NCBI GenBank assembly: GCA_965112735.1 | Contig: OZ218962.1 | Location: 2,232,001-2,296,000, forward strand | From: Phaeosaccion multiseriatum | Lineage: Eukaryota > Protista > Ochrophyta, other classes | Direction of reading: 5' to 3' | DNA: 64,000 nucleotides | Shown here: piece by piece, positions 38,592 to 54,688 of the stretch | Layout of the letters: each line of letters opens with the position of its first letter | Numbering within the stretch: position 1 is the stretch's first letter | Program-made: the position numbers and the translations under genes | The notes under the pieces: model-generated | What the model saw: the letters and a program-made list of their open reading frames with translations, nothing else | Database searches by the model: none | Told to the model about the DNA's origin: nothing

Positions 38592-40261
38592 TCACTTGAG
38601 GTTCTTCAAACCCTCTCTCAGGCTCTTGTCTATGGCTGGTAGGAGCTTCACGTGCTTATCTACACAGTTCCTACTAAAGCACTTTTGCATCGCTTCCTGG
38701 GCCTTGTTTTGGAGAGCCGCGTCGTCCTGAGAGGAAATCGCGTATGTGTGTGCGTGTGGGTGGGTAGGTGGGCGCGTTTTGGTCGGTGGATGGATGGATG
38801 GCAGTGGATGGGTGGGTGGGTGCAGACAAGTATATGGACAAGGTGTTGAGGCCACAAAAGGGCAGCACGCGGCAGCAGCAAGAGGAGGGTGGTAAGTGGG
38901 AGGGTTTTGAGCAGCAGCAGCAGCAGCCAGGGTGGGTGGGGTGGGTCGGTGGTCGAGAGGGGGGTGCCACAGAGGTACATGTAGCAGAGAGCAAAGGATT
39001 GGCAGCGGACTGTGGACAGGTACGGGATGGGAGCGCAACAGATTCAGAGGCTGCGTGGAAGGTAGTGATGATGTTGCTAGTCTCACTTGTCAGGGCTCTT
39101 GAGCAGCAGAAGTGGTGGTGCGAACGACTAACAGTGCTGAATCATCTTCCTACTCCTCCTCCTCGATCCTCCTACGACTGCTCCTGCTGCTCCTCCTCCT
39201 CGTACCACTGCTACTGCTATTCATTCATGCTACACTACTACTACTATATAGTAGTAGTAATAGGAATATTGCTGCTGCTGCTGCTGCTACTCCTCCTACC
39301 TCTTCTACTCCTCTCCTTCTCCTTCTCCTCCTTCTCCTCCTGATTACTACTACTGCTGCTGCTGCTCCTCTTACCACTACTACTACCATACTCCTCCTCC
39401 TTCTACTACACCATACTCCTCCAGTACTACTACTACTGCTTCTCCTTCTCCTTCACTACAACAACTACTCCCAACTACGACAACTAAACAACACCCCGAC
39501 CACACCCACCTGACTACCAGCTCCACGCATGAGGTCCTTGACCTCGTCCTGACACGCCATTGAGCAGCGCTCGAGGCGATTCTGGGAGATGGCAGCAGAA
39601 GAGTGGGGGGGTGGATCGTTTTGCTGTCAGACACGATGGACAGATGGACACCTGGCCGACAGGCAGATACACAGACAGACACAACACACACAGACAGAGA
39701 GAGACATGTAGAGAGACACACACAGAGAGAGAGACAGAGGGACAGAGGGACAGAGACACAAGAGAGAGAGAGAGAGAGAAAGAGAGACAGAGAGACCAAT
39801 GCACACGGCCCGCCCCTTAAAACCTTTGCAAGAGTACTGCCATCACCAAACATCACCGGACAAAGGCAGCAAGCTTACTTGAAAGTCATTGATCTCGTGG
39901 TTAATGATGTTCTGAGCCTGATTGATTGCCGCTCCACAGTTTTGCACGCAATTCTGTGTTTGCTGCGCGTTCGTGCCTTTCCGGTCAAAGCACGCCGCCA
40001 TACATAGATAAGATTTCTGGGGTTGGTGTCGCGGTGGGATACGAGGGGAGGAGGGGGGGGGGGAGAGGGGGCGGGGGATAGAAAAAGAGAGAGACAGAGA
40101 CGTGGGCGGAGAGAGAGAAAGGGGGTGAGGGACAGTTGGACGACACAGCTGAAAACGGGGGAGGGAGACAATACCTTCTGCAAAGGGTTCAGCATATCTT
40201 TGGTGATGCCCTCGATCATCTCCGTGACCGCCTTCTGGAGCTTCGCCTGTCCATCGGCCAT
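38592..40261 (-). CDS. FAM136A: FAM136A (DUF842) family protein, 4 exons
   Basis: Spliced reading MADGQAKLQKAVTEMIEGITKDMLNPLQK|KSYLCMAACFD...QNCVQNC...INHEINDFQ|NRLERCSMACQDEVKD|...KCFSRNCVDKHVKLLP. Paired Cx3C-like motifs and FQNRL.RC...CQD typical of FAM136A. Confidence 0.88.
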
Positions 40262-40404
40262 GATGAGCGCCTTTGCTTTGCACAAGGTTCTTATTTTCTT
40301 TAATTAATTAAAGTTTTCTTGCCCTCCCGAACTCCCCGCCGCTCGTCGACCCTCCAGTTTCAGTTTCCGTTTCATAGTCGGCACTCCTACTGTACGACCA
40401 TTTA

Positions 40405-40555
40405 GGTAAGGGTTTTGAGTGTGGTTTCGTGTCGAGAGCAGCATGTGGTCGCGACATTAGCTAAGGCTTATTCGTGTCGAGAGCACGAGGGGTGGTCTCA
40501 AGTCGGAGCCACGACTGAGCGCAGGGGACAGGCTGGCGTACACGCGGATTCGAGC
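40405..40555 (+). repeat. Left terminal inverted repeat
   Basis: Reverse complement of 50059-50210 with few mismatches. Contains TTCGTGTCGAGAGCA twice (40426-40440, 40471-40485). Confidence 0.92.
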
Positions 40556-40754
40556 ATCCACCATCCCCCCCCCACCCACATAGTACTCCTTGAGAGCTCA
40601 CTCGGTGTCCAGAACGATGACAGACTCGGGGCTACGGCGGTCAGAGAGAAGCGGAACGCAAGCAAGTTTAGGACGGTATGTTCGCAACGCCGGTCCCCCC
40701 ACTCAAAGGAAGGAACCTTCTCCAACGTCTGTCGCACCCCGTAATCCAAACAGC

Positions 40755-42389
40755 ATGGGAAAGGGAAAGGGAAAGGGAAAGGGAGGGAAAGGAGAACTCG
40801 CTGCGAGAGGAGGAGGAGGAGGAGGAGGAAGGAACGGAGGGGCTCCGTCACCGCCGGTAGACACAACAGCGAGGACAGGAGCGGGAAGGACACCGGCATC
40901 CGCAAGTCCGACACCAGGAGGAGCGGGAGGATTGGGAGGACCTCTGTCTGATTTCACAGATTTCACAGCATCTCCAGGAGGCGAACCGGGGGCGGCGGCC
41001 GCTCCGTCATCATTACCACCACCCGCGGTAGCACCAGCGACAACAGAGGTTGAGGGAGTAGCGGGAGCAGCGATTTTTGGAGGAGAAGGGGGCGCCGCAG
41101 CAGCATCAAGGATTCCTTCTCCACCAACTACAATTGGAACAGAGGGCCTTGCGGAGGGGGCTTTGGAAAGGGGTAGCGGAGAGAGTCAAGCCGAACTTAG
41201 CAAAGCCCAGGAACATGCTGCTGCCACTGCTGCTGCCACTGCTGCCTCTGCTACTGCCTCCGGATCCGTGCTCCGAGAGGCAGGGAAGTCCACGTCAGCA
41301 CTCCCTAGTGGCGCGAGAGGAGGAAAAACTAAGAGGTGAGAAGGACCTGCCTTGTCTCGTCTTTAAAGCTTCATTCTGTCCGCCTGCTGTAACGATTTCA
41401 ACACGTCTCTTCCAACACCCCTGCGCAGAACGACGCAGAAGAAAATCCTTGGGCTCCTGAAAGCCAATGCAGTGTCATCACAGGAGAGGGAGGCGTTAAA
41501 GAAGCAGTACAGAGGCAAAATGAACGCCGCTGCGGCCATGTTGGCGGCCTGCGGCGAGAAAATTGTTATCGTTGCGGCGGAAGACAGTGAGGTCCGAAAG
41601 ATTGTGACTAACAATTTCCCGAATGGCAGCGTCCTGGCTACGGCTCTGCGAGACTCCCGTGTGAATTCCATCATCCGCGAAGCTGTGAACGATATTCTTC
41701 CGAGGCAAGTGCAAACGTCTACAGCTGTTCAAGCGTCCGAACCCAGGACCCCTGAAAAGATTGTGGAGGAGGACGTGTCAGTGAAAGAGCTGCGCAAGGT
41801 CTGTGCGGTCTTGATGAAGCGCCATGCAGGAGATGTTCTGCAGGGAAAAGTCGAACAGAAGAAGCAGGAAGCCGCGCAGAGGGGGGCAGGGGGACGGCAG
41901 GAGGCCGTGGCGGACCCTGGGACAGGGGGGGCGGTCAGGGATGGTCTTCACCAGCTCAACGCGAAAGGCATCGCCGACAGCGGCCACAGGTACTGCATCG
42001 GAGCGACGCCGCAACCGAAGTATTGGCAAGGTGTGACCTACAACGGCAAAGCTATGGACTGGAAGGGATTTGGAGCCTTTCTCAAAGCAAAGCACTACGC
42101 GTGTTTGAGAATTCCCGAGAGCTTGGCGCACTCTGTGGTGGTTGCGTACACGAGGCACGTGTACGCAGCGGCGGCTGGAAGCAGCGGCGACAGCAACGGC
42201 TCAAACACCACCAGGGATCGCCAGAGGATCGGATCCGAAGCCGTCGAAGGCAGTCTGCATTCATTGATCAGAGAGGGCAACAAAGACGTCGCGGAGGCCC
42301 CACTCGACAAGGGCAGCAAGAAGCGAAAGCGGGGAGAGGCGGAGGCAACACCACCAGTATCAGTACCACCAGTAATGACTAATGTATGA
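40755..42389 (+). CDS. Transposon accessory gene of unknown function, 2 exons (40755-41335, 41429-42389)
   Basis: In-frame GT..AG join of two ORFs, ~513 aa. Low-complexity N-half, helical C-half, NLS-like KKRKR near the C-terminus. Confidence 0.6.
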
Positions 42390-42396
42390 TTTAGAT

Positions 42397-45300
42397 TTAA
42401 GTCTCTCCTGCCTCCTTCCTCCGCTCCGCCTCCTTCAGCAGCATCCGCGCGATCTCATTGCGCTTCTCCCCCATGTCTTCCTCCCGCACCTCCTCCTTGA
42501 GGGACTTGCCCTCATAGATGCACCTTGCAAAGGACACAGTAAAGACTCCGCAGTCGTATCCATTCTTCTGCCAGGGGGTCGTGTCGCTGCAAGTCGGCAG
42601 GGACTGCCATCCAACCATGTCCATGGGCGCTGCAGACAGGAGGAAGAAGGGGGGGGGGTGGTTAATGAGAGACAGAAGACACAGCGGTGAGCTTGCCCAG
42701 ACACTTACTCTTGAGCTTATCCACGTGCTCGTCCTGCAGCCAAAGCATGATAGCGTTGCGTGCGAGGTCGCCTTTGCCCCACTTGCTGTCGTAGCACTGC
42801 ACTACCTTCTTCTCCATGTCAATGACCACCAAATACCAGTGATGCATGTGAATGTTGACCGGCACAATGACCTTGCCACACTCGAAAACGTTTCCCCCCA
42901 CCACCTTTTCGCCTTGTGTCCACCTCTTCACGTTCGCGTAGACGTACTGGTCCATGCTGAGGAACTTGTCGGTGAGCTTGTGGAGGAAGTGGGAGTTGAA
43001 GAAGTGGGTCGGGCGGCGTTCGCTGTCCAGCTCACACTTCGTCTTGTCGTCCTCTGCCATAAGGTCGAGGCAGAGATTGATCACCTCGTCGTTCAGCCAC
43101 GTGAAGGACAGCAGGCACCGTAGCGTGTTCCGCGTAATCTCGGCGTTGAAGAGCGTAAAGAGAATTTCGTCCCCCTGCCCACCGTGGAAGGCCCATTGTA
43201 GGGCGGCCTCGTCACCCTCTGGCGGCAGCCCCGCCGTGTTTGCCTCTGTAGGTCGCCCCCTCTTTCGCTTGCGACTCTGCCCCTCCCCCGCCCCTGCTGT
43301 GACTCCTGCTCCCCCCTCCCCGCCTCCTTCTGATGCTCCTGCTCCTTGCCCTCTCCCTTCTGATCTCTGTGCCTCTTCCTCTCCTTCTTGTACTGCCCCC
43401 CTGGGGTCTGTATCCTCGGATTTCTCTTCCTCTACCCCTTCGTCCTCCTGCACGACGCTGCCCACCGAATCGCCCCGCGGCGACGGTTGAGGCGCCTCAC
43501 GATGGAGGCCTTGGCGGAGGCCCACAAGAAGAGGGCTGGAACTGGCCTCGCCAACCTGCTCCTGGACAGGGGTGCGGCGTGAGAGGAGTAAAAAGGATGG
43601 AGGGAGGAGAGGTGGGATGGTTTTCGAGTGAGACACCCAGACGAGGTCAGCCGAAGCCTCCAAAGCCAACCAGAAACGAACATTCTCTTCCTCCGGGCTG
43701 ATGGTCTCCATGTCGGGCATGGTGACCTGTAAAGGAGAGACACACACACACACACACACACAAACATACACACACACATGTATCACTTTGACAAGCAAGC
43801 CTGGAAGGGGGCCAGGGTAAAGCACCTACCGCTTCGATTGCTCCTCGTGAGCCTTCCGCGGCCATGTCCTTCAGTCTCTTCTCCGCGACCATGTGTAAGA
43901 AAACGTTAACGTACATCTGAGCTGTGCGCGACGACATGTGCGCCAACTGGGAGTCCACAGGCAAGGCAGGCAGGCACAAAAAGCAAGGAAGTGAGGAGAA
44001 AAACTTGAGTGAGCTGTAGCCCGAGACTCTCCTTCACCTGCGTGGCGATTTTGCGAACCTCCTTGTTGTTCTGCTCCGCCGCTTGGGTGTCAAGGCTTCG
44101 CAAGACGCTGAGGAAGAGACGACAATCACGACGGGGAAGGCGGCTGAGTTCTTACACTGTGGGGAAACTGAATTGCCCAGGGGAATGTACCCAATTCAAG
44201 GGTATGGGCAGGGGGCAGGAGAGAGAGGGGGGGGGGAGTTTACCTGTACTCTTCGAACAAGAGAGGCACATTCTTCTCGTACGCTGACCGTTTCATCAAA
44301 CTCAAGATGCCGTAAAGGGTGTTGCAGGCCACATGGTTGGGCAAATGAAAGCGGTCCAGGCAAAACCTGATGCGAAAAAGTAGGCGCGGGTCCCGGTACA
44401 AGATGTACTTGTGCAGCTTACACACTGGGCCAGGAGGACGAGGAGAGGAGCAACGGAGAGCAACGGAGAGCAACGCAGAGCAACGGAGAGCAGAAGTTAG
44501 GCATTTCCTTGGCAACTGCTGCATCAACCCAGCACACTCTGTTCACCGCGGAGGCAGCAGAGGGGGGTACGGACGCTGCCTGCCGCACTTCCAACCCTTT
44601 TCAGTGACACTGAAGGAAATTCCAATCCCTTCGGAGGCGAAGCGGTACAGGGTTGAGGCATCGCAGAGCACTGTAGAGGCACCAACAAAGCATGAACAGG
44701 GCGTCATACACACTCTGTATCACTTCAGAAGCACCAGGAATGAGTACGGGCATTCCCCCCCCCCCCCCGCCCCCCCACAACCAAAAAAAGTCAGGCCGAC
44801 TAAGTCACTGAATCAGCCCCCCTACGTGACCATGGTGGACCCTTGCCACAAACCCAGCGCGCATCGCTTGCCTCTGGTGAGGCGCACAAGGAAACATGGG
44901 CCTGACCAATCTATGTACCCTGCACCAGTGACTTCACAGGTGGTCTTGGCCCTCCCCCTCTGCGTCTCAGCTTGGGGAAGATCACCACCCCTGTTACGTG
45001 TCAGCCAAGCCGGAGGTATTCCCGAATCTCTTTGTCAGGAGCTCAGATAAAGGATCCTCTACAATCCTACCAACCCTCAAACATGCAGCAGTCCATTCAC
45101 CTCCTCTGCTTGGGCCAAACCGGCACCCAGTTTGCTCGTGCCGCCAAAGTAAGTCACTGAATCACCCCCCCTGGGTCACCATGGTGGACGCTTGGCCGAA
45201 ATCTAGCGCGGATCGTTTGAGTTTGGTCAGGGCTACAAGGAAACCTAATCAGACATTGGGGTAGAAACCCACAAGGTTGACTTCACAGGTTAGCGTAGCA

Positions 45301-48300
45301 AATCCCTCTCATTTCTGCCCCAAAACAGGGAAAACGACCACCTGCACAGCGTTTAAGCCGGCATGACCAACTTGCCCCACTATTTTTGGTCTGAAGCTGC
45401 CCCTACGCATCCTCTACCCCTCTGCAGATTACTAAGCGGTGCCGCAGTCACTGATCCCCTTCCCTCCACCCAAACACTTTCGATTCTGCTCATGTCTGAC
45501 CCTGTCAGGCACCGAATCACGCCCGAGGGGGGTCACACGACAGGCACAAGTGACCAGGACTTTCTCGCAGGCCCAGCTTGACCCCTCCACACTTTTCCGA
45601 CTCTTCTGGAGATGTCAGAAAGGTGTGAAGAGTATACTAGCAGTGCTGCGGAACCGTCCTTACTTGTCCCCGCGGCCTTTGAGGAGTCGAGAGGGAGTAC
45701 AGGGGGCATCGGCAGCATCGCCGGACCCTCAGTACTCCTCACCGAACCCTCTAAAGACCTCGGGACGTCATAAACACTGTACCAGCAGCACTACCAGACT
45801 CTGCACACTCCTCCCCGACCCTCGAGAGGGCCTTCACCGCTTCAAAGGCTCCACACTCATTCCCCACAAACAACCCTCAGACGCGTTAAGCTCACCGTTG
45901 TCGTAGATCCATAGCACTCTCGCGTGCTTGGAACTTGAAGCACTCCAGCGTCGAATCAGCTCAAAAGGGTACGCCACCGACTCTGGCCTCGGCATGAACA
46001 GCTGGGCGAGCGGGAACCGATGAGAACAGAAGCATAAGAACAAGCCCGACGACATGTTGGCACAGCTGCTGCTGTTCTTGCAGCACAAGCCGTCGTCCTT
46101 GTCCACTCCGGTCTTGTTTGAGGAAGGCCCGCGGTTCTCCTCATCCTGTGCGTAGGGTCGCCTCTCCGGTCTCTGCGGTACAAGAGACGAGAAAAAGGCC
46201 CAACAACACACAAAGGCGAGAGGACAAGTAGGCGAGTTCAGGGTTGAGCCAGAAGGGCGGGGGGGAATGGTTCGAAGGCAGGAGTACGGAGCGCATGGTT
46301 TTGGACATGAGAGAAAGGAGGTGGGTGGGTGGGGGGGGGGTAGCGGGGGGTAGCGGGAGGGGAAAGGGGGCGGAAAGCTCAGCAAGGTCACAAAGCGGGG
46401 AAGCCATGATCCCATGCGGTGCTGTCCACTTACACTTTCGAAGGTCTGCGAGCAGCAGAATCCTTGTGCCCAGTCATCGTCCTTCGACACGACCTTCGTC
46501 TCCAAGGGGCGGTGCAGTCCCTTGTCCGCCTCGTCCATCTCCTTACACACGACTATGAAGCGGTTTCGCACCTCATTCCTACGCTGAACATTCCCCAGAA
46601 GGAAAGTGGGTGTCTTGTGCGCAAAACACTCCTCGTGCACGAAGTGGAGCCTTCCCTCTTCAATGGCCTTCTCGTGGCGCTCCCTCAGGAGCCTATACTC
46701 CATCACTGCCATGGCAAAAAGAGGGTAGTGCCTCCAGAGGCGAGTCAAGAGCTCCGGGGGGCACTCCTCCATGTCCTTCTCCAGCCAATCTGCAAGCCAA
46801 AGGTGTGTCCCGAAAATGTACCTGCCGGTGGGTGCACCGAGGCCCAGAGGAGGGACAGTTGCAGCTCAGTACAGACAAAAAAACTGCACAGGCCGGAGCG
46901 ACTTGTCCAGGCCTTCTCTGTCTCAAGGACGCACCTCTCTACCTCCTTCGAGTCCAGCACGTGCACATCGTCCTCGTGCCCCGCGTCTGGTGAGACTCCT
47001 TCGTCCTCGTCAAAAGGCCCCGTCAAAGCTGTTGAAAGTACGTCCTCCTCAACGCCTTCGACTCCTCCACTGAGCCCCGGGAGAACGTCCGACGCTCCAT
47101 CCGCCGCAAAGTTCCTGCACAAGTATCTCCAGAGGGGAGGGAACACTTCCGCAGTCGGGACTCCAACGGCGGGACTTTGAATGGGAAGGGATTGAGGGGG
47201 GCAGGGGGGATATCCAGGGGGGGGGGGGCAGAGCGTTTGGACGATTGGAAGTGTAGGGTGCGGTGCAGAGTGAAAGAAGAGTTCATGATGGTGGCCTTGC
47301 CTCACCTCACGGACTCGGCCTTGTAGCCCGCGAAAGCGTCAAACCACATGAAACAGTCCTTCACCCATTCCGGTACTTCACCGCCATTTTGCAGCTCGGT
47401 AAGCTCCTCTCTTGTCAGCTGGGGACGATGCTTCCCCTCCTTGCCGCCACTCGTTTTCACTCGTGCATACCTCAGCAGGGCACTGCGTGTAGGCTGCTGA
47501 CGAGAACCAAGCTCCGTGATATCCCCGAAGTGTAAGCGCTTCAGCGGGGGGAGGTCCTTTCTGACTGAGTTGGTCGGTTCAGCCAGATTCATCAACTTTC
47601 GTTGAAGGCCTGAATCAGTGAGTGCACATGTCGCAAGCATACAGAGGCATGGGTGTGGGACGAGGGACGACGGACGTGATGCATACACGAAGTGACGTAG
47701 CGAAATCAAGGGGAGAAGGGGAAAGAAAGGGGGGGGGGGAGAAGAGGGCGGGGGGGCATATACGGAGGGAGGATCGGATCGAGGGAGGCAAGGGGTAAGG
47801 CCCCTATGGGGAGGAAGGAATACATAGGAGAGCAGCTGATACCGCGAGAGAGTAGGAGGCAGTAGGAGGGGGCAGAGAAGAAGCAGGGGCGGTGTGTAGG
47901 CAGCGAGGGAGGACGCGAACGAGGTAGGCAGGAGGGTAGGGGGGTAGGGGCGGGGGCGGTGGACAGAGAGTGAAGAGGAGGGGGTACGCAGGGGGGCGGG
48001 TGGGTGGGGGGGGGGGAGCGGTGGGCAGGGAGGGAAGGGGGGGAAGAAGGGAGAACAGAGGCAGGCCAGGCGCGGGTGGGGGGGCGGGGGGAGGGAGGAA
48101 GGGAGAGAGGGATGGGAGGGATGGGAGGGATGGGAGGGATGGGAGGGAGGTAGGGAGGCTGCTCAACACTTACCCTCCATGAGACCGTCGACAACGAATG
48201 CCCACGGGTCCAGACCGCAAATAGGGCAACACGGCCAGGGGTCCAGGACGCCCTCCATATTGAGGAGGAAGGCCATGAGGCCCTGCCTGCCCCGCGCTCT

Positions 48301-49875
48301 CAGAGTCTCCGCAGGGATCGTGAGCACATCTGTCAAGCCAAGTCTAGATGCTCCGTCCACGCAGCATCCTGTCCAGTTGGCTGCTGTAGTACCGTTGCGT
48401 CGGATTTGGTCGAGAAAGTCGAAGCCAGCTTTGTAAGCCAAGACTGTGGTATACGTGCTCCGAAAGAGGGCATGGCTGGAGGTATCCGCCAGGGCGATGT
48501 GGCCGCACCTGGGGCATTGATAGTCCACGAGCACGAGGTAGTGCGGGAAGACCGCTTCCTGTGTCCAAAGACAAGGTTGACTGTGGATGGCAGTCATGCT
48601 CGAGCCACAGCTGGCGCATATCGAAAGTGCTTCAATCCGCTGTGGGTAGGGCTTGCCGTAAAAGTAGGCCTGCATCAGCTCCACTATCTCCGAGTTGCCC
48701 CCCTGTCGCCCTAACCATGCCACTTGACGTTGGTGCAGCGATATTGCGTCCCCATTTGTTATAGTCTCCACCATCTCTTGAATATTGCGCGTCGGCCTGT
48801 GGTGCGGCGTGTCCGAGTACTCGGGCGCCGCCGCTCTGGGTTCGTCCGAGTGTAACTCCTCCCAAGCGATGCCATACATGTCGTCGCCCCCCCCCCCCCC
48901 AAAGTCTCCTGCCCCATCGTACACGTCTTCACTCCCTACGTCTTGAAAGAAGCCGTCCTCCCCTTCCCCCCTGTCCCCACAGCCCCCGCCCCCTCCGGAG
49001 GTGGGAAGAAGGGCGTCCCGTGACACGAGATGCGCAGCAATCTCGCACTCCCCTTGCTGGCACTCCATGCCCAGCAGACTCAGACAAGTGCCACAGGCGG
49101 GACACAAATTGCGACTGCAGAGCTCGCCACAAAGTGACTGGAAAAGTAAACGACAGCGAGCGACAGGGGATTCAGGGGGGGGGGGGTGGAGGTCAAGTGA
49201 GACCAAATCGAAGCGAAAGCGAGCTGTGTCAGACTTTTCGTCAATAGCTCCACTCCCTACCCATCGTACCTTATGACCCACGCACTCCAAGCCTTCACGC
49301 ACTGGTTCAGGAAGCTGTGCGCATCGCTCACTCCAGGAGGAAGATACGTCCCACAAGAGGGTGCTCTCGGGGAGGGGTGAAGAGAGCAGTGAGGAGGCGA
49401 GGAACTTGGCGCAACAACTCTCGGCACTGTCGATTCTTACAGCAGGGGCGGTCTCCTGGATGGACAATGAGTGCCGGCGACGGAAGGCAGTCTTGTGTGC
49501 ACCGAGTCCGTGCAGCTCTCCACAGTGCAGATGCCATAACCGGTGCAAACATTCAGAGCTGCTTGGCAGCACGGAACCATTCCACCCCTCAATGCAGTTA
49601 CCAGGATGAGGACACATACTGTTGAAGACCTTGCGTTGGCCCTCAAGTGTGATACCAGACAGGGACAGCTTCGCTTTCCGCAATGTTTCTAACAATGCCT
49701 GAAAGATCAGCCATTCCTCATCAATCGCTCGTTCGGCAAACGTGTACTCGAGGCCTACGGTACTCTCAACTGCAGCACACTCATCGTACCGTCGCTGGAG
49801 TCTATCGCCCGAAGCGCTGAGGTCGTCGAAGAGCCCGAGCATATCTCCAGTACTCTCTGCACTCGCAACAGGCAT
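42397..49875 (-). CDS. KDZ-type transposase with Cys-cluster Zn-binding regions, predicted to be fused by splicing to a C-terminal Ulp1/SENP (peptidase C48) domain
   Basis: Exons give CASCG..CPRCG, CPICGLDPWAFVVDG, GLFLCFCSH..PES, IYDN|VCKLHKY..CLDRFHLPNHVAC and LDTQAAEQNN, then WLNDEVIN, HFFNSHF, VPVNIHMHHWYLVVID, YDS and QKNGYDCGVF (complete His-Asp-Cys triad). Confidence 0.8.
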
Positions 49876-50058
49876 GGTGACGTGTGTAACTGTCTCTCAC
49901 CTTGTTTCCCACCCTGAAAGGGCGCTGAAGTCTTAACGTTTGAGGACGTAAGAGCAGCCCAGTAGAGAGTGGGAAAGACAAGCAGAGGAGGGAAAAGGTC
50001 GTGTCATTACCACGCAGTGCGAAGAGGAGATCCCGAGAAGATCCAGTGTGCCCGTGCG

Positions 50059-50210
50059 GCTCGAATCCGCGTGTACGCCAGCCTGTCCCCTGCGCTCAGT
50101 CGTGGCTCCGACTCGAGACCATCCCTCGTGCTCTCGACACGAATAAGCCTTAGGTCATGTCGCGACCACATGCTGCTCTCGACACGAAACCACACTCAAA
50201 ACACCCTACC
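50059..50210 (-). repeat. Right terminal inverted repeat
   Basis: Reverse complement of 40405-40555. Confidence 0.92.
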
Positions 50211-50246
50211 TAAATCGTACGAGGATAGGCAGAGAAAAGAAATATC

Positions 50247-51887
50247 ATGAGTCTGCGGGCTGCGACCGCCTTGGGGCTGCTATTCCTGGCAGGATATGCT
50301 CCCGCAACGCAAGTGACTGCATTCACTGTCTCTCTCTCTCGAAGCGGAGGGAGGACAGGTTGCAGAAGAAGTCGCAGCATTGGTAGCAGCCGCAGTAGCA
50401 GCCAGAGTAGAGTTGCCAAAGCCAGTGAGGAATGCCGGGCGTGTGCCATCAATGGTAGGTCATCATGGCTGGCGATGAGTACCGAGGGCGCGGCTTCATC
50501 AAAGCCGCTCTCCGTTCCATCGACTCTGAACGACAAGTTTCCACTGAAGAACGACCTCATCCTGCGCGTGGCGAGAGGGGAGAAGGTGGAGAGGACGCCG
50601 GTGTGGCTCTTCCGGCAAGCAGGAAGGCATCTGCCTGAGTACACGGCCTATAAGGAGCAGACGAGCAAGAACTTCCTCGAACTCCTGCAGGACCCCAAGG
50701 ATGTGACGGAGGTGAGGAGAAGGAGCGAGAGAGGAGGAAGGGGCACAGTAGAAAGCACAAGCTGCAGCAGCAGTTGCACCTTGCAACCCTCGGAGCAGAA
50801 GAATTTACTTTTGGGTCGCTGTGCAGGTGGAAGAAGTCAGCCGTGAAGAGAATAATGGGGAAAGCCAAAGCCAAAGCCAAGCCCTTCCCCCCTCCCTTCC
50901 CGTCGACCATTGTCTCCATGCCTTGTCTGAATCTAAGCCCCCAACCACCATCACCGCCCATCCCCACGTCCACCTCTCCCTTCTCTCTCCCGCCCCTCCC
51001 CGCAAACCAACGCAACCAGGTGACGATGCAGCCCCTGCGCCGCTACGACCTCGACGCCGCCATCCTCTTCAGCGATATCCTCGTGGTAGCAGAGGCAATG
51101 GGCATTGAGGTTTCCATGCCGGGAGGAAAGGGCATTCTCGTCCCGAGGTGGGTGGGTGGGTGGGTGTGGTGGGGAGGAAGGGAACGCCGGGGGAGAGGGG
51201 AGGGGTCTCGTGGCTCTTCTTTCCATCATGAGGGTGCCTCCGACTAGATGCATCTATCCTATCCCACGCTCAATGTTTGGCCACACTCCTTCAAGCCTCA
51301 CACTTTATGCTGTTCTTCTCTGAGCGGATCAGCAGTTGTAGTAGTAGTAGCCGCAGCAGCAGCAGCACGCACGCACGCACGCACGCACGAACGCTCGCAC
51401 CGACGTGGAACACAGTGTGCTTTGTTTCTTCTTTCTCGCCATCCTCTCTATCTATCGTGGCTGCTGCTAGTCAGTCCAGTACCTTACTACTTACTGACTG
51501 CAGAACTCTGTCCTCCTCCTTCCCTCTGCCTCACTGCCTTATTGGCTTCACCGCCTTGCTGCCTTCCCTGCCTTACTGCTGCAGACCCCTGTCTGATCCC
51601 GACGACATGGAGCTTCGCCTGCCCGCGAAAGTGGATGTGCAGGACAAGCTCAGCCATGTACTAGAGGCGGTCACCTCCATTAAGGAGGAGCTCAAGGGGA
51701 AGGCGAGTAGGGGGACGGGGGAGGAGGAGGGGAGGGAGGGAGGGAGGAAGGGAAGGGACGGAGAGAGGGGGGGGGGGGGAGGAGGGGAGAGAGTGGCGAG
51801 AGACAGGAGCTCACGTTCTCTTGTTTACTTCGCCATCTTACACACACGTATCCACACATGCACACACGCACGCACACACACATCCAC

Positions 51888-51936
<49 letters not shown>

Positions 51937-54688
51937 TACGTTCAGGTGCCTCTGATCGGCTTTAGTGCCGCCCCTTGGACGCTGATGTTCTACATGGTGG
52001 GGGGCAGCAGCCGCAAGAACACGCACAAGGGCGAGAAGTGGCTCACCAGATACCCCAAGGCCTCTACCAAGCTGCTGGGCCTGCTCACAGAGGTACGGTG
52101 TGGTGGGCGGGTGGGGACGGAGGGACGGAGGGACATACTGAGAAGAATCGACTTGGTCTCTGAAGGGCCGACTGCTCTTGCTTTTGTTTTGTGTTTATGC
52201 TTTGAAATGCCCTTGTTGGGCAGGATCCGGGGGCGGGGGGGGGGGGGGCGGGTGCTTTGGTTTCTTGATTTCTTGAAAATCATCCCTATCCCTCGCTCTA
52301 CCCTCATTCATAATATATATATATATATATATATATTTGAAAGGACTCTTACCCCCCTTTCGTGGTTCAGTCCTGTGTGCCTCCCTGTCTTGTGTGTTCC
52401 TGCTGGCCCACCCACCCACCTACCAGCCCCCACCCAACCTGTCCAATGCATCATTCTTCAAGCCTGAAGAATCGAGTTGGAAGCGTGAATCTGAAACTAA
52501 AACGAAACGTCGCATCCCTCTTTGGAACGAAGAATAGATGGAGGAATGGCAAAGCCTCATCGATATTCATTTGTCTGTTTGTGTTGTTTCGTCCCTCTTT
52601 AGGTGGTTGTGGACTACATGGTGGCTCAAGTGGAAGCGGGCGCCGATCTCATACAGGTATGTCAATGAACATGAGCATGTGTGGAGTTACACTCCTAAGA
52701 GGATTTTCGATACATGTATAGCATCGATGTCTGTTGATGTAGATAGGTCGGCGGAACACCTACATACTGTATGTGTGTGTGGGTGTGGGTGCGTGCGTAC
52801 CTGATCATAGATAGGTATGGAGTCGGCCAATCGGTCTAAATGTTGCTTACCCTCCCCCCTCCCTCACTCGTCTCTCCCCTCCCTCCCCGTCTACTCTCTC
52901 TCTTCCCTTCCTCTCTACTCTCCCCTCCCTCCCTCCTCATCTGCGTCCTCTCCTCTCTCCCCTCCCCTCCTCCCGTCTCCCATCCCTCCTTCTTCCCTCT
53001 CTTCTCTCTACCCTCCCCTCGGGAAGGTGTTTGAGGCAATGGGAGCGTTCATTACCGAGGAAGACTTTTACACTTTCGCCTTTCCCTGTATGGCACGTAT
53101 TGCCAAGGAGTTCAAGCAGAGGTGTCCAGGTGAGTGTGGGATGGAGGTAGAGCGTGGACAGGGGAGGGAAGAGAGGGAGAGGGAGATGGAGAGGGAGGGA
53201 GGGAGGGAGAGAAAGGGAGGCGGGGGAGAGGGAGGGAGAGGGCGCAGGCGCTGAGGACGTGAGCTGACGCCTTCTTTTCAGACCCCTTGAGGCCCTTAGC
53301 TTGCCCACACCAGCACACACACACATACACACACCCTCTTTAGTTGTCCTTCCTCACCCTCTCCCTCCCCCTCCCCTCCCCTCTCCTCAGAGGGAGGCGG
53401 GGGAGAGGGAGGGAGAGGGCGCAGGCGCTGAGGACGTGAGCTGACGCCTTCTTTTCAGACCCCTTGAGGCCCTTAGCTTGCCCACACCAGCACACACACA
53501 CACACACACACCCTCTTTAGTTGTCCTTCCTCACCCTCTCCCTCCCCCTCCCCTCCCCTCTCCTCAGGCGTGCCCTTGATGGTGTTCCCCCGAGGGGCCA
53601 CTTACTCCAACGTGTCCCTGCAGGAGGCAGGCTACGATGTTGTAACGCTCGACACTGAGAGCGACAGAAAGGGCACAAGGAAGGCTCTCAAGGACGGAGC
53701 CGCACAGTCAGGTAAGAGGATGGAGGGAGGGGGAGGGGGAGGGGGGGTCGGGGGTGGGGTTTTCGTTTGGCATGGGGGTAGAGGTGGGGGTGTTGTCCTC
53801 TCTCTTCTCGTTCTCTCTGTGTGTGCATGTTGTCCTGTTGCTATTGTTGTCGCGTTGCTGCTGTTGTTCATCTCGCGGGGCGCTCTCCCCCTCCCGTCCA
53901 CACACCTTCTCGTCTCCTCTCCTCCTCTCTTCTCCCTTGTCTCTCGTATATCACCTTCTCCTCTCTCTCGCCCCTCTCAGTCTCTCCTCTCTCTTCGTGT
54001 ACCTCCTCTCTCACCTCTCACTATCCCCTCTTCTCTCCCCACCCACTGACTCACACACACACACAACACACACACAATTACGTAATGTTTAGGTTGATTC
54101 CCGTAAGTCAATGTATCCTCCCCACCCACTAACCCCCCACCCACCCGACCCACCCACCCCAGGCTGCAAGGAGTCCGCTGTGCAGGGCAACTACAGCCCG
54201 AAGGTGTTTGTGGACGGCAGCGAGGAGGAAGTGCAGAGGACCGCGGAGGAGATGCTCAGCGACTTTGGCCCACAGGGACTCATCGCCAACCTGGGGTACG
54301 TACGTGCGTGTGTAACTGTTTTTTATGTACGCTGCTTACAGTCCATGCTACGTAATGCACCGAACTAAAGGGGGGGGGGAGGGGATTTGACTTTCAGTAG
54401 TGTGAGTCCTCTTCTTTGTAACTAAACTATCAGTCCAGTCCTCCTCTTCCTTCTTCGCCCAAAACTGCCCCTAGGGGTGTGAGGGTGGTACGTGTTACCG
54501 CCACTTTTACTGGCTAACTCACTTACTTACTGCCTTACTGACTTACTGACTTGTTTCCCTCCGGGTTGCTTGCGTTGTCCCGCAGTGAGGGTTTGATGGG
54601 CAAGGAGAAGCCCGAGCTGGTCAAGGCCTTCGTTGACGCCATCCACAGCGTCAGCGAGACCATGATCAACGAGGAGAAGGAGGCCTGA
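50247..54688 (+). CDS. hemE: Uroporphyrinogen decarboxylase, probably plastid-targeted, multi-exon
   Basis: [108 protein letters not shown]-terminal signal peptide ending ..VTAF, then a Ser/Arg-rich transit peptide. Stop TGA at 54686-54688. Confidence 0.95.
53214..53567 (+). repeat. Tandem 177-bp duplication of the 3' end of a UROD intron
   Basis: 53214-53390 and 53391-53567 are near-identical; each ends in a polypyrimidine tract plus CAG. Confidence 0.9.

Follow-up and report, generated by a model that had tools for sequence, protein, structure and literature searches.

Transposons of the Kyakuja-Dileera-Zisupton (KDZ) group are, to our knowledge, among the least characterised DNA transposons of eukaryotes, with no structure available, with catalytic residues that lack experimental verification and with a body of knowledge that is mostly fungal. 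The element described here lies in a stretch of 64,000 nucleotides from the genome of the intron-rich alga Phaeosaccion multiseriatum (contig OZ218962.1, positions 2,232,001 to 2,296,000 of the forward strand), in the following called the window, to whose numbering all positions refer unless another contig is named. We regard it with good confidence as an autonomous DDE-type class II transposon which was active very recently and which, though far diverged, most likely belongs to the KDZ group. As a mobile element it is of a known kind; new are a motif-based link of such an element to Pfam-verified KDZ sequences, a previously unlinked group of metagenome loci, an explicit exon model for the transposase and the use of a shared intron position as a sign that a host protease was captured at the DNA level.

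While Zisupton and Dileera make target-site duplications (TSDs) of 8 bp, Kyakuja makes TSDs of 7 bp, possesses 5'-CA...TG-3' termini and has been reported without terminal inverted repeats (TIRs) (PMC12730594). With a 7-bp TSD and a 5'-CA terminus, the window element resembles Kyakuja-1_LB and its relatives in Agaricomycotina (PMC12730594); the KDZ-domain block Y-D-x-x-C ... F-H-x-x-x-H ... D-x-x-x-x-E is common to both as well. On the other hand, it has TIRs of 157 nt and ends in ...ATC-3' where Kyakuja has no TIRs and ends in TG-3', in place of TET/JBP cargo it has an orphan gene and a C48 protease, and its exons are undetected by the Pfam KDZ profile. Within the KDZ group, the element stands, by its 7-bp TSD and 5'-CA tip, nearer to Kyakuja than to Zisupton or Dileera. 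Zisupton, known from fish, fungi, algae and nematodes, is similar in its TIRs and in a multi-exon transposase of about 1,300 residues (PMC9297572), but combines, in its canonical architecture, a SWIM zinc finger with CxC4 and the KDZ domain (PMC11343200). A preliminary description of the locus, made from the window sequence, had likened the element to Zisupton, an assignment that does not agree with a TSD of 7 instead of 8 bp (PMC12730594) nor with the failure to find a SWIM finger on any exon.

Among experimentally mobile relatives, KDZ1-KDZ3 and KDZx1 of Cryptococcus are, at 6-11 kb and with long TIRs of up to 236 bp, of closely similar build (PMC11343200); their catalytic domain is preceded by a zinc-chelating cluster of Cys at the N-terminus, to which the Cys clusters of exon 1 may correspond, and, as in the window element, additional open reading frames (ORFs) without recognisable domains are present (PMC11343200). 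They differ from the window element by 8-bp TSDs, by clear Pfam matches to PF18758 and CxC and by the lack of a protease. In algae, KDZ elements have been found in brown (Ectocarpus KDZ-1_Ec32) as well as green (Chlamydomonas) lineages, where they often carry accessory genes and where pseudogenised transposases are mobilised in trans (PMC12477816; PMC8226300). Those algal elements are giant (over 10-30 kb) and classifiable by homology, whereas the element in the window is compact and, exon by exon, invisible to profiles. With respect to the protease, the closest described case is Kaonashi (KIU), an Ulp1 of plant Mutator-like elements (MULEs) and VANDAL elements, a host domain which was transduplicated and kept intact and which, in VANDAL, has been linked to the escape from epigenetic silencing (PMC13317346). 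Common to both is a host Ulp1/C48 domain that was taken into a DNA transposon and remained intact (PMC13317346); the transposase, however, belongs to another superfamily, and the Ulp1 of the plant elements resides in an accessory gene of the VANC type, not at the end of the transposase.

The ends of the element and its terminal features are the following.

40399 to 50216: whole transposon, 9,818 bp, with its ends placed where similarity among six genomic copies stops
40392 to 40398: left TSD, GTACGAC, of the 7-bp direct repeat that flanks the element
50217 to 50223: right TSD, GTACGAG, which matches the left GTACGAC in 6/7 positions
40399 to 40555, plus strand: left TIR, 157 nt, from the alignment of the arms and the six-copy comparison
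50059 to 50216, minus strand: right TIR, 158 nt, from the same alignment and comparison
40426 to 40440 and 40471 to 40485, plus strand: 15-bp motif TTCGTGTCGAGAGCA, twice in the left TIR, candidate binding sites of the transposase
50129 to 50143 and 50174 to 50188, minus strand: the same 15-bp motif TTCGTGTCGAGAGCA as a mirror pair in the right TIR

The preliminary description had set the element at 40405-50210 with TIRs of about 151 bp; the element and its long TIRs are real, while the bounds fell a few bases short at each end. Ungapped, the arms (40412-40555 and 50059-50202) are 97% complementary over 144 nt, and the six-copy comparison extends them, small indels included, to the tips 5'-CATTTAGGTA... 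at 40399 and ...TACCTAAATC-3' at 50216, such that the 5'-CA is present and the 3' end reads ...AAATC. The 15-bp motif TTCGTGTCGAGAGCA occurs four times in the window, where 0.01 occurrences would be expected, each time within a TIR, and the members of each pair are spaced 45 bp apart. The TSD of the window copy matches in 6/7 positions, and three sister copies are flanked by perfect 7/7 TSDs (GGGGGGC, GCTGGCC and TTCTTCT), in all three of which a reading as an 8-bp TSD fails.

The genome, 67.1 Mb on 22 contigs, holds six full-length copies: the one in the window, two on contig C12 and one each on C1, C2 and C3. The left TIR is 100% identical in all of them, and identity among the six exceeds 99% over 9.8 kb, where substitutions occupy 24 columns and indels some two dozen sites, mostly homopolymer lengths. 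Judged by these copies, the family is apparently very young, a cut-and-paste TIR element that was active very recently; a locus that is single-copy and fixed, the situation which according to the preliminary description would speak for domestication, is not what the genome shows, with six copies and TSDs in the family. Under the exon model of the window copy, each of the five sisters holds a frameshift or a nonsense codon, and in four of them a one-base length difference at 41925 shifts the frame of the second gene, gene B. The window copy, which had been called apparently intact, does keep its 1,260-codon transposase frame and the frame of gene B open and is, provisionally, the only copy to do so; it is therefore likely to supply the family with transposase.

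Two of the copies depart from the regular pattern at their ends. The copy at C2:1771861-1781671 has no TSD, its end 7-mers GATGGCC and CTCCGGG being unrelated, and in the copy at C1:6834421-6844237, also without duplication, the right tip is changed to ...CCCTTAGG from GATTTAGG; recombination between copies, deletion of a flank or an assembly problem are possible causes in both. Besides the full-length copies, the genome contains 612 bp of the right end with 99.8% identity (C2:5376630-5377241) and an isolated 47-bp TIR tip (C2:4989183-4989230), perhaps left behind when transposition was aborted or imprecise. A family of miniature inverted-repeat transposable elements was considered and rejected, as the genome shows just this end fragment and this tip. 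A genome search for diverged paralogues of exons 2-4 returned the six copies only.

Since the minus strand is split into many short open stretches, the transposase gene was modelled by tracing GT...AG pairs that keep the frame.

48174 to 49875, minus strand: transposase exon 1, residues 1-567, a 570-codon ORF from the ATG at 49875, with the Cys/His module, Cys clusters and VVDG
46434 to 46789, minus strand: transposase exon 2, with phase-matched GT-AG junctions and a G+C content of 0.35 at second (GC2) and 0.76 at third (GC3) codon positions
45896 to 46001, minus strand: transposase exon 3, which ends in ...VLWIYDN with the putative second catalytic Asp
44244 to 44424, minus strand: transposase exon 4, (V)CKLHKY...DRFHLPNHVAC, with the [C/D]xxH and H(3)H block
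44038 to 44107, minus strand: transposase exon 5, DTQAAEQ, with the putative catalytic Glu
43830 to 43946, minus strand: transposase exon 6, placed by traced splice junctions and coding periodicity
42709 to 43726, minus strand: exon 7, a linker and the first part of the C48 protease with the catalytic His and Asp
42397 to 42629, minus strand: exon 8, the end of the C48 protease with Gln and the catalytic Cys (QKNGYDCGVF), coding to 42400, with the TAA stop at 42397-42399

The eight exons, separated by seven GT-AG introns of 1384, 432, 1471, 136, 91, 103 and 79 nt, join into one frame of 1,260 codons without internal stop, in agreement with the multi-intron minus-strand gene that had been proposed. 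All introns possess GT[AG]A/G donors and pyrimidine-rich CAG acceptors and are without the codon periodicity of exons 2-8 (GC2 0.31-0.44, GC3 0.69-0.79). Exon 1 is coding-like from about residue 250 on, while its earlier part is backed by homology to a metagenome protein (P0001) and to a locus on contig C12. Exon periodicity and the homology of exon 1 are independent of the splice tracing and support the model.

Several introns contain repeats. In the 1,471-nt intron 3, a 95-nt sequence is directly repeated (44801-44895 and 45150-45244) with 80% identity at a distance of 349 bp; an (AC)19 microsatellite (43740-43778) in intron 6 lies directly upstream of the acceptor of exon 7, and long arrays of the (AGGG)n type occupy part of intron 1 (47947-48158). 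The lengths of the (AC)n and (AGGG)n arrays vary between copies.

In the joined frame, Cys clusters of exon 1 (CxxC...CxxCxH and CCxxC) are connected with the motifs of a catalytic core in exons 3-5, as had been claimed. VVDG at residue 561, at the end of exon 1, would contribute the first catalytic Asp; DRFHLPNH follows at residue 745 in exon 4 and TQAAEQ, with the presumed Glu, at residue 789 in exon 5, all three as listed in the preliminary description, whereas YDNVC at residue 719 is not contiguous in the DNA but formed only by splicing across the junction of exons 3 and 4 (YDN/VC). The catalytic residues were assigned by the position of the motifs. DRFH represents a [C/D]xxH motif 25 residues past the second Asp and FHLPNH an H(3)H motif, and the KDZ-like domain is split over at least four exons, which leaves 35, 59 and 23 residues per exon around the motifs. 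The element thereby carries the signature that follows the second Asp in KDZ transposases, Y-D-x-x-C, about 20 residues, F-H-x-x-x-H-x-x-C and D-x-x-x-x-E. The clade of CMC, Plavaka and Transib, in which C(2)C and H(3-4)H separate the second Asp from the Glu and TSDs measure 2-5 bp (PMC12730594), was considered and rejected, as exons 4-5 contain H(3)H but lack C(2)C and the TSD, at 7 bp, does not fit.

In the N-terminal region, residues 57-204 of exon 1 match P0001, 193 residues long, at E 2e-11. The Atlas neighbours of exon 1 are clusters of CxC4, CxC5, CxC1 and CxC2, which are associated with KDZ, at 0.84-0.88 and thus below the lead threshold of 0.9. A Cys/His module of exon 1 (49641-49507, about residues 79-123, 45 amino acids), which reads MCPHP..C..GW.GSVLP...C...HCG.LHG and overlaps the region matching P0001, is 49% identical to C12:2985805-2986047, a locus otherwise unrelated to the element. 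This module may be an unnamed DNA-binding domain.

Membership in the KDZ group was approached with a degenerate DNA pattern derived from the core of the element (Y-D-x-x-C-x-[LF]-x-K-Y, 14-24 residues, F-H-x-x-x-H), with which metagenome contigs were scanned; its chance expectation is roughly a handful of matches, depending on the size of the metagenome collection. The pattern matched 12 loci, and these take only two of the 31 allowed lengths, 105 nt (n=7) or 102 nt (n=5); ten were scanned with Pfam, five of each length. All five scanned 105-nt loci are PF18758 (E 8e-15 to 2e-28) and hold the blocks CRHD, GE, YDIxC, FHxYGHxxxC and DGExxER. The 102-nt loci have the exact spacing of the element, read ...YYDFACMLEKYCLARDPWLFRNVVFMIDKFHLKNHTC...TQV[CA]EQ and find in KDZ their best Pfam match (E 2e-4 to 3e-3), which is the sole match in three of the five, while the other match in the remaining two is at chance level (E 0.23). 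Exon 4 is 44-53% identical to this group (37 bits), and of the aligned positions that the pattern did not select, 9/23 are identical, compared with an expectation of one or two; equally unselected is T-Q-x-x-E-Q, as the group carries T-Q-V-[CA]-E-Q at the place equivalent to TQAAEQ of the element. Aligned with hhalign, a KDZ alignment matches exon 4 together with the 102-nt group at P 1e-4 and exon 4 alone, in the correct register, at P 0.0099. When an unfiltered hidden Markov model (HMM) of the KDZ core was run against 3,676 six-frame segments (142 kb of the genome), the segment of exon 4 ranked fifth with 4.9 bits, an empirical p of about 0.0014.

The closest relative of exon 4 outside the genome lies on metagenome contig Ga0115568_10016114, which is intron-rich with 54-60% G+C and on which a short sequence translating as ...RDLRTCAS... 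or ...TCARAQV... recurs in several frames, as a dispersed short repeat in presumed introns. A word-index search with a bona fide KDZ ORF returned six close relatives only, too few for a deep profile.

For the C48 protease at the end of the gene, Pfam PF02902 matches exon 7 at E 7e-16 (59.1 bits) and exon 8 at E 9e-9 (35.9 bits), with a cut-off of 20.7. Exon 7 aligns to SENP2 at E 3e-18 and exon 8 to SENP1 at E 7e-5, and these alignments retain all four residues, the His in His-Trp, the Asp in YDS, and both Gln and Cys in QKNGYDCGVF. The module is hence predicted to be catalytically complete, as the preliminary description had assumed with an intact triad, and under the gene model with its clean GT-AG introns it stands in frame with the transposase. 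Apart from the six element copies, C48 matches in the genome are confined to a few single-copy genes. The closest of them, a single-copy gene on contig C5 (likely donor C5:1949265-1949985, minus strand, the C48 exon in an open frame of 484 codons), is 57-59% identical over the domain and shares position and phase of the intron with the element (AAGCTCAAGA/GTAAGT ... CAG/.GCCCATGGAC, slashes marking the splice sites); the flanking exon DNA is nearly identical between the two, while the intron measures 79 nt in the element and about 165 nt in the C5 gene. As the exact intron position is shared with a host gene, the protease must have moved as genomic DNA. The C5 gene is nearer to the Pfam C48 consensus (74 versus 61 bits for the element), and the transfer would most simply have gone from host to element. 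Capture appears recent enough for the donor gene and the shared intron position to stay recognisable, and independent of Kaonashi. The preliminary description had pointed to Ulp1-like SUMO proteases in Zisupton and some MULEs, and some Zisuptons do carry a SUMO-protease domain; the comparison with the C5 gene speaks against an ancestral feature held in common with these elements and for a local capture of a host gene, intron included.

A number of observations speak against the KDZ reading or limit its reach. Searches of the transposase for similarity, family and fold were run exon by exon, and no exon matches Pfam KDZ, CxC or any transposase family at E up to 10; in a Pfam scan that covered all long ORFs and 20 stop-free segments, C48 was the sole match. 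A six-frame search of the genome with PF18758 was empty, with its control empty too, and another with a KDZ alignment made here was empty as well, without a working control. Exon 4 has neither a word-sharing candidate in the word-index search nor a usable Atlas neighbour, and, among exons that took no part in the choice of the loci, exon 3 reaches only P 0.14 against the KDZ alignment, though in the right register ending on YD, and exons 5 and 6 gave nothing significant in hhalign against a shallow KDZ profile (effective number of sequences 1.5). The metagenome loci were picked by motif, and part of what their Pfam and hhalign scores express is this choice itself; on Ga0115568_10016114, the longest contig of the 102-nt group, Pfam is silent on 3.6 kb of sequence upstream of the motif. 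For the first catalytic Asp and for the Glu, the assignment follows position alone. A phmmer search with exon 1 among 1.84 billion representatives found a single weak match, the 193-residue protein, from a contig of 1.8 kb, and single-sequence AlphaFold predictions are unusable for exon 1 (mean predicted local distance difference test score 37) as well as for gene B (39). The fusion junction between exons 6 and 7 is predicted from the genomic sequence, and the differences between copies, often homopolymer lengths, possibly are assembly errors, which makes the singling out of one intact copy provisional. In sum, the core signature retrieved only KDZ and one KDZ-like group, while a KDZ profile match, whose absence the preliminary description had named as grounds for refutation, is missing exon by exon; the KDZ likeness claimed from the outset is thereby supported in part, and membership in the group is, with fair assurance, probable but not proven.

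Much of this could also be accommodated by an undescribed DDE lineage of the [C/D]xxH type that is sister to KDZ and shares the short block after the second Asp by deep ancestry or by convergence, with the five 102-nt metagenome loci as its only known relatives. The failure of Pfam KDZ on every exon would be expected of such a lineage, as would scores of 17.8-21.3 bits for the 102-nt group under a KDZ gathering cut-off of 26.6, merely 4.9 bits and rank 5 of 3,676 for exon 4 against the KDZ-core HMM, and the lack of significant KDZ similarity in exons 3, 5 and 6; moreover, a pairing of 7-bp TSDs with long TIRs is unreported for Kyakuja, which has no TIRs (PMC12730594). Yet a signature of ten residues at near-equal spacing retrieved nothing but KDZ and the 102-nt group, KDZ is the top Pfam family for that group with the other match at chance level (E 0.23), and the CxC-like N-terminal neighbours together with the overall architecture favour KDZ, so that we consider a separate sister lineage rather improbable. 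Considerably less probable still is a MULE, although long TIRs, a DxxH about 25 residues after the second Asp, convergent genes and a captured Ulp1 would suit it. The Glu stands in a context of T-Q-x-x-E-x-x-N, which we take to resemble the Glu motif of MULE/IS256 transposases and count in favour of this assignment. MULEs make TSDs of 8-11 bp, longer than the 7 bp of the element, which counts against it. While the [C/D]xxH motif is common to MuDR, hAT, P, Kolobok and Dada (PMC3706591; PMC8230255) and transduplication of Ulp1 is documented in MULEs (PMC13317346), PF10551 was silent genome-wide at E 10 with a working control, no exon matches MULE, SWIM or FAR1 families, and the metagenome scan with the core pattern returned no MULE.

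A different question, which concerns the gene and not the superfamily, is whether the protease is fused to the transposase at all. The element could comprise three genes, with a transposase that ends after exon 6 and a C48 protein that starts at an ATG at about 43719 in exon 7, which opens V-T-M-P-D-M and hence offers an in-frame Met of its own; in MULEs, Kaonashi is indeed a separate gene (PMC13317346). The donor of exon 6 (GCG/GTAGGT) and the acceptor of exon 7 (TCTCCTTTACAG/), however, are both phase 0 and of good quality, the frame of exon 6, if unspliced, enters a (GT)n tract, and coding periodicity restarts exactly at the modelled acceptor of exon 7. An unfused protease is accordingly judged unlikely, if a serious contender.

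In the reading as a far-diverged KDZ transposon, the eight-exon gene would encode a protein of 1,260 residues whose N-terminal Cys/His clusters may bind the motifs in the TIRs and whose RNase H-like core would cut and rejoin the ends, with VVDG and IYDN each supplying a catalytic Asp and TQAAEQ the Glu; the block with DRFH and H(3)H would sit between the second Asp and this Glu. The C48 module would derive from a single-copy host gene and have been copied together with its intron, just as plant MULEs gained Kaonashi, and its most likely role would be the removal of SUMO either from the transposase itself or from chromatin or repair factors at the element. As the preliminary description proposed, the protease may counter SUMO-dependent silencing. 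The convergent orphan gene would probably provide an accessory protein.

Taken one step further, the element and the five contigs of the 102-nt group could constitute an undescribed clade of KDZ-type transposases from protists which is invisible to current profiles; the family in the window would have independently captured a fragment of a host SENP/Ulp gene with its intron, fused it to the transposase and retained one functional master copy. We hold this composite picture for a tentative possibility that falls just short of being probable. If a functional master copy exists, a naturally active DNA transposon would be usable for tagging in this alga. With one compact and apparently autonomous copy, five broken siblings nearly identical to it and clean TSDs of 7 bp, the family is a practical substrate for studies of excision and of new insertions between strains. 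The case also illustrates that profile-based annotation can wholly miss intron-rich KDZ relatives. After the Kaonashi MULEs, this would be a second independent case of a transposon that keeps a catalytically intact host SUMO protease, and as the capture of SUMO proteases recurs, the link between deSUMOylation and transposon success becomes testable outside plants.

The second gene of the element lies on the opposite strand.

41520 to 42389, plus strand: gene B, an orphan of at least 289 codons that ends in a KKRKR basic patch, with an uncertain 5' end

Its frame is open from 41367 to 42386 and shows coding periodicity from about 41334, with the first ATG at 41520, while the stretch rich in G, A and P upstream is not coding-like in that frame. 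Gene B has no Pfam match and none that is significant among 3,955 word-index candidates. The stop of gene B, which ends at 42389, and that of the transposase gene at 42397-42399 are 7 bp apart; the convergent arrangement of the two genes pointed out in the preliminary description is thus real, whereas the likeness to MuDR drawn from it is descriptive only.

The insertion splits a short divergent promoter region between a DUF842 gene (39843-40283, minus strand, ORF start at 40283) and the gene of uroporphyrinogen decarboxylase (UROD; 50247-52467, plus strand). A habit of inserting close to promoters is not claimed, as five to six of the six copies have an outward ORF within 140 bp compared with 45% of random sites (P about 0.07). 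The ATG of the UROD gene, at 50247, is 30 bases from the end of the element, and expression of this gene of the haem and chlorophyll pathway may be affected by the insertion.

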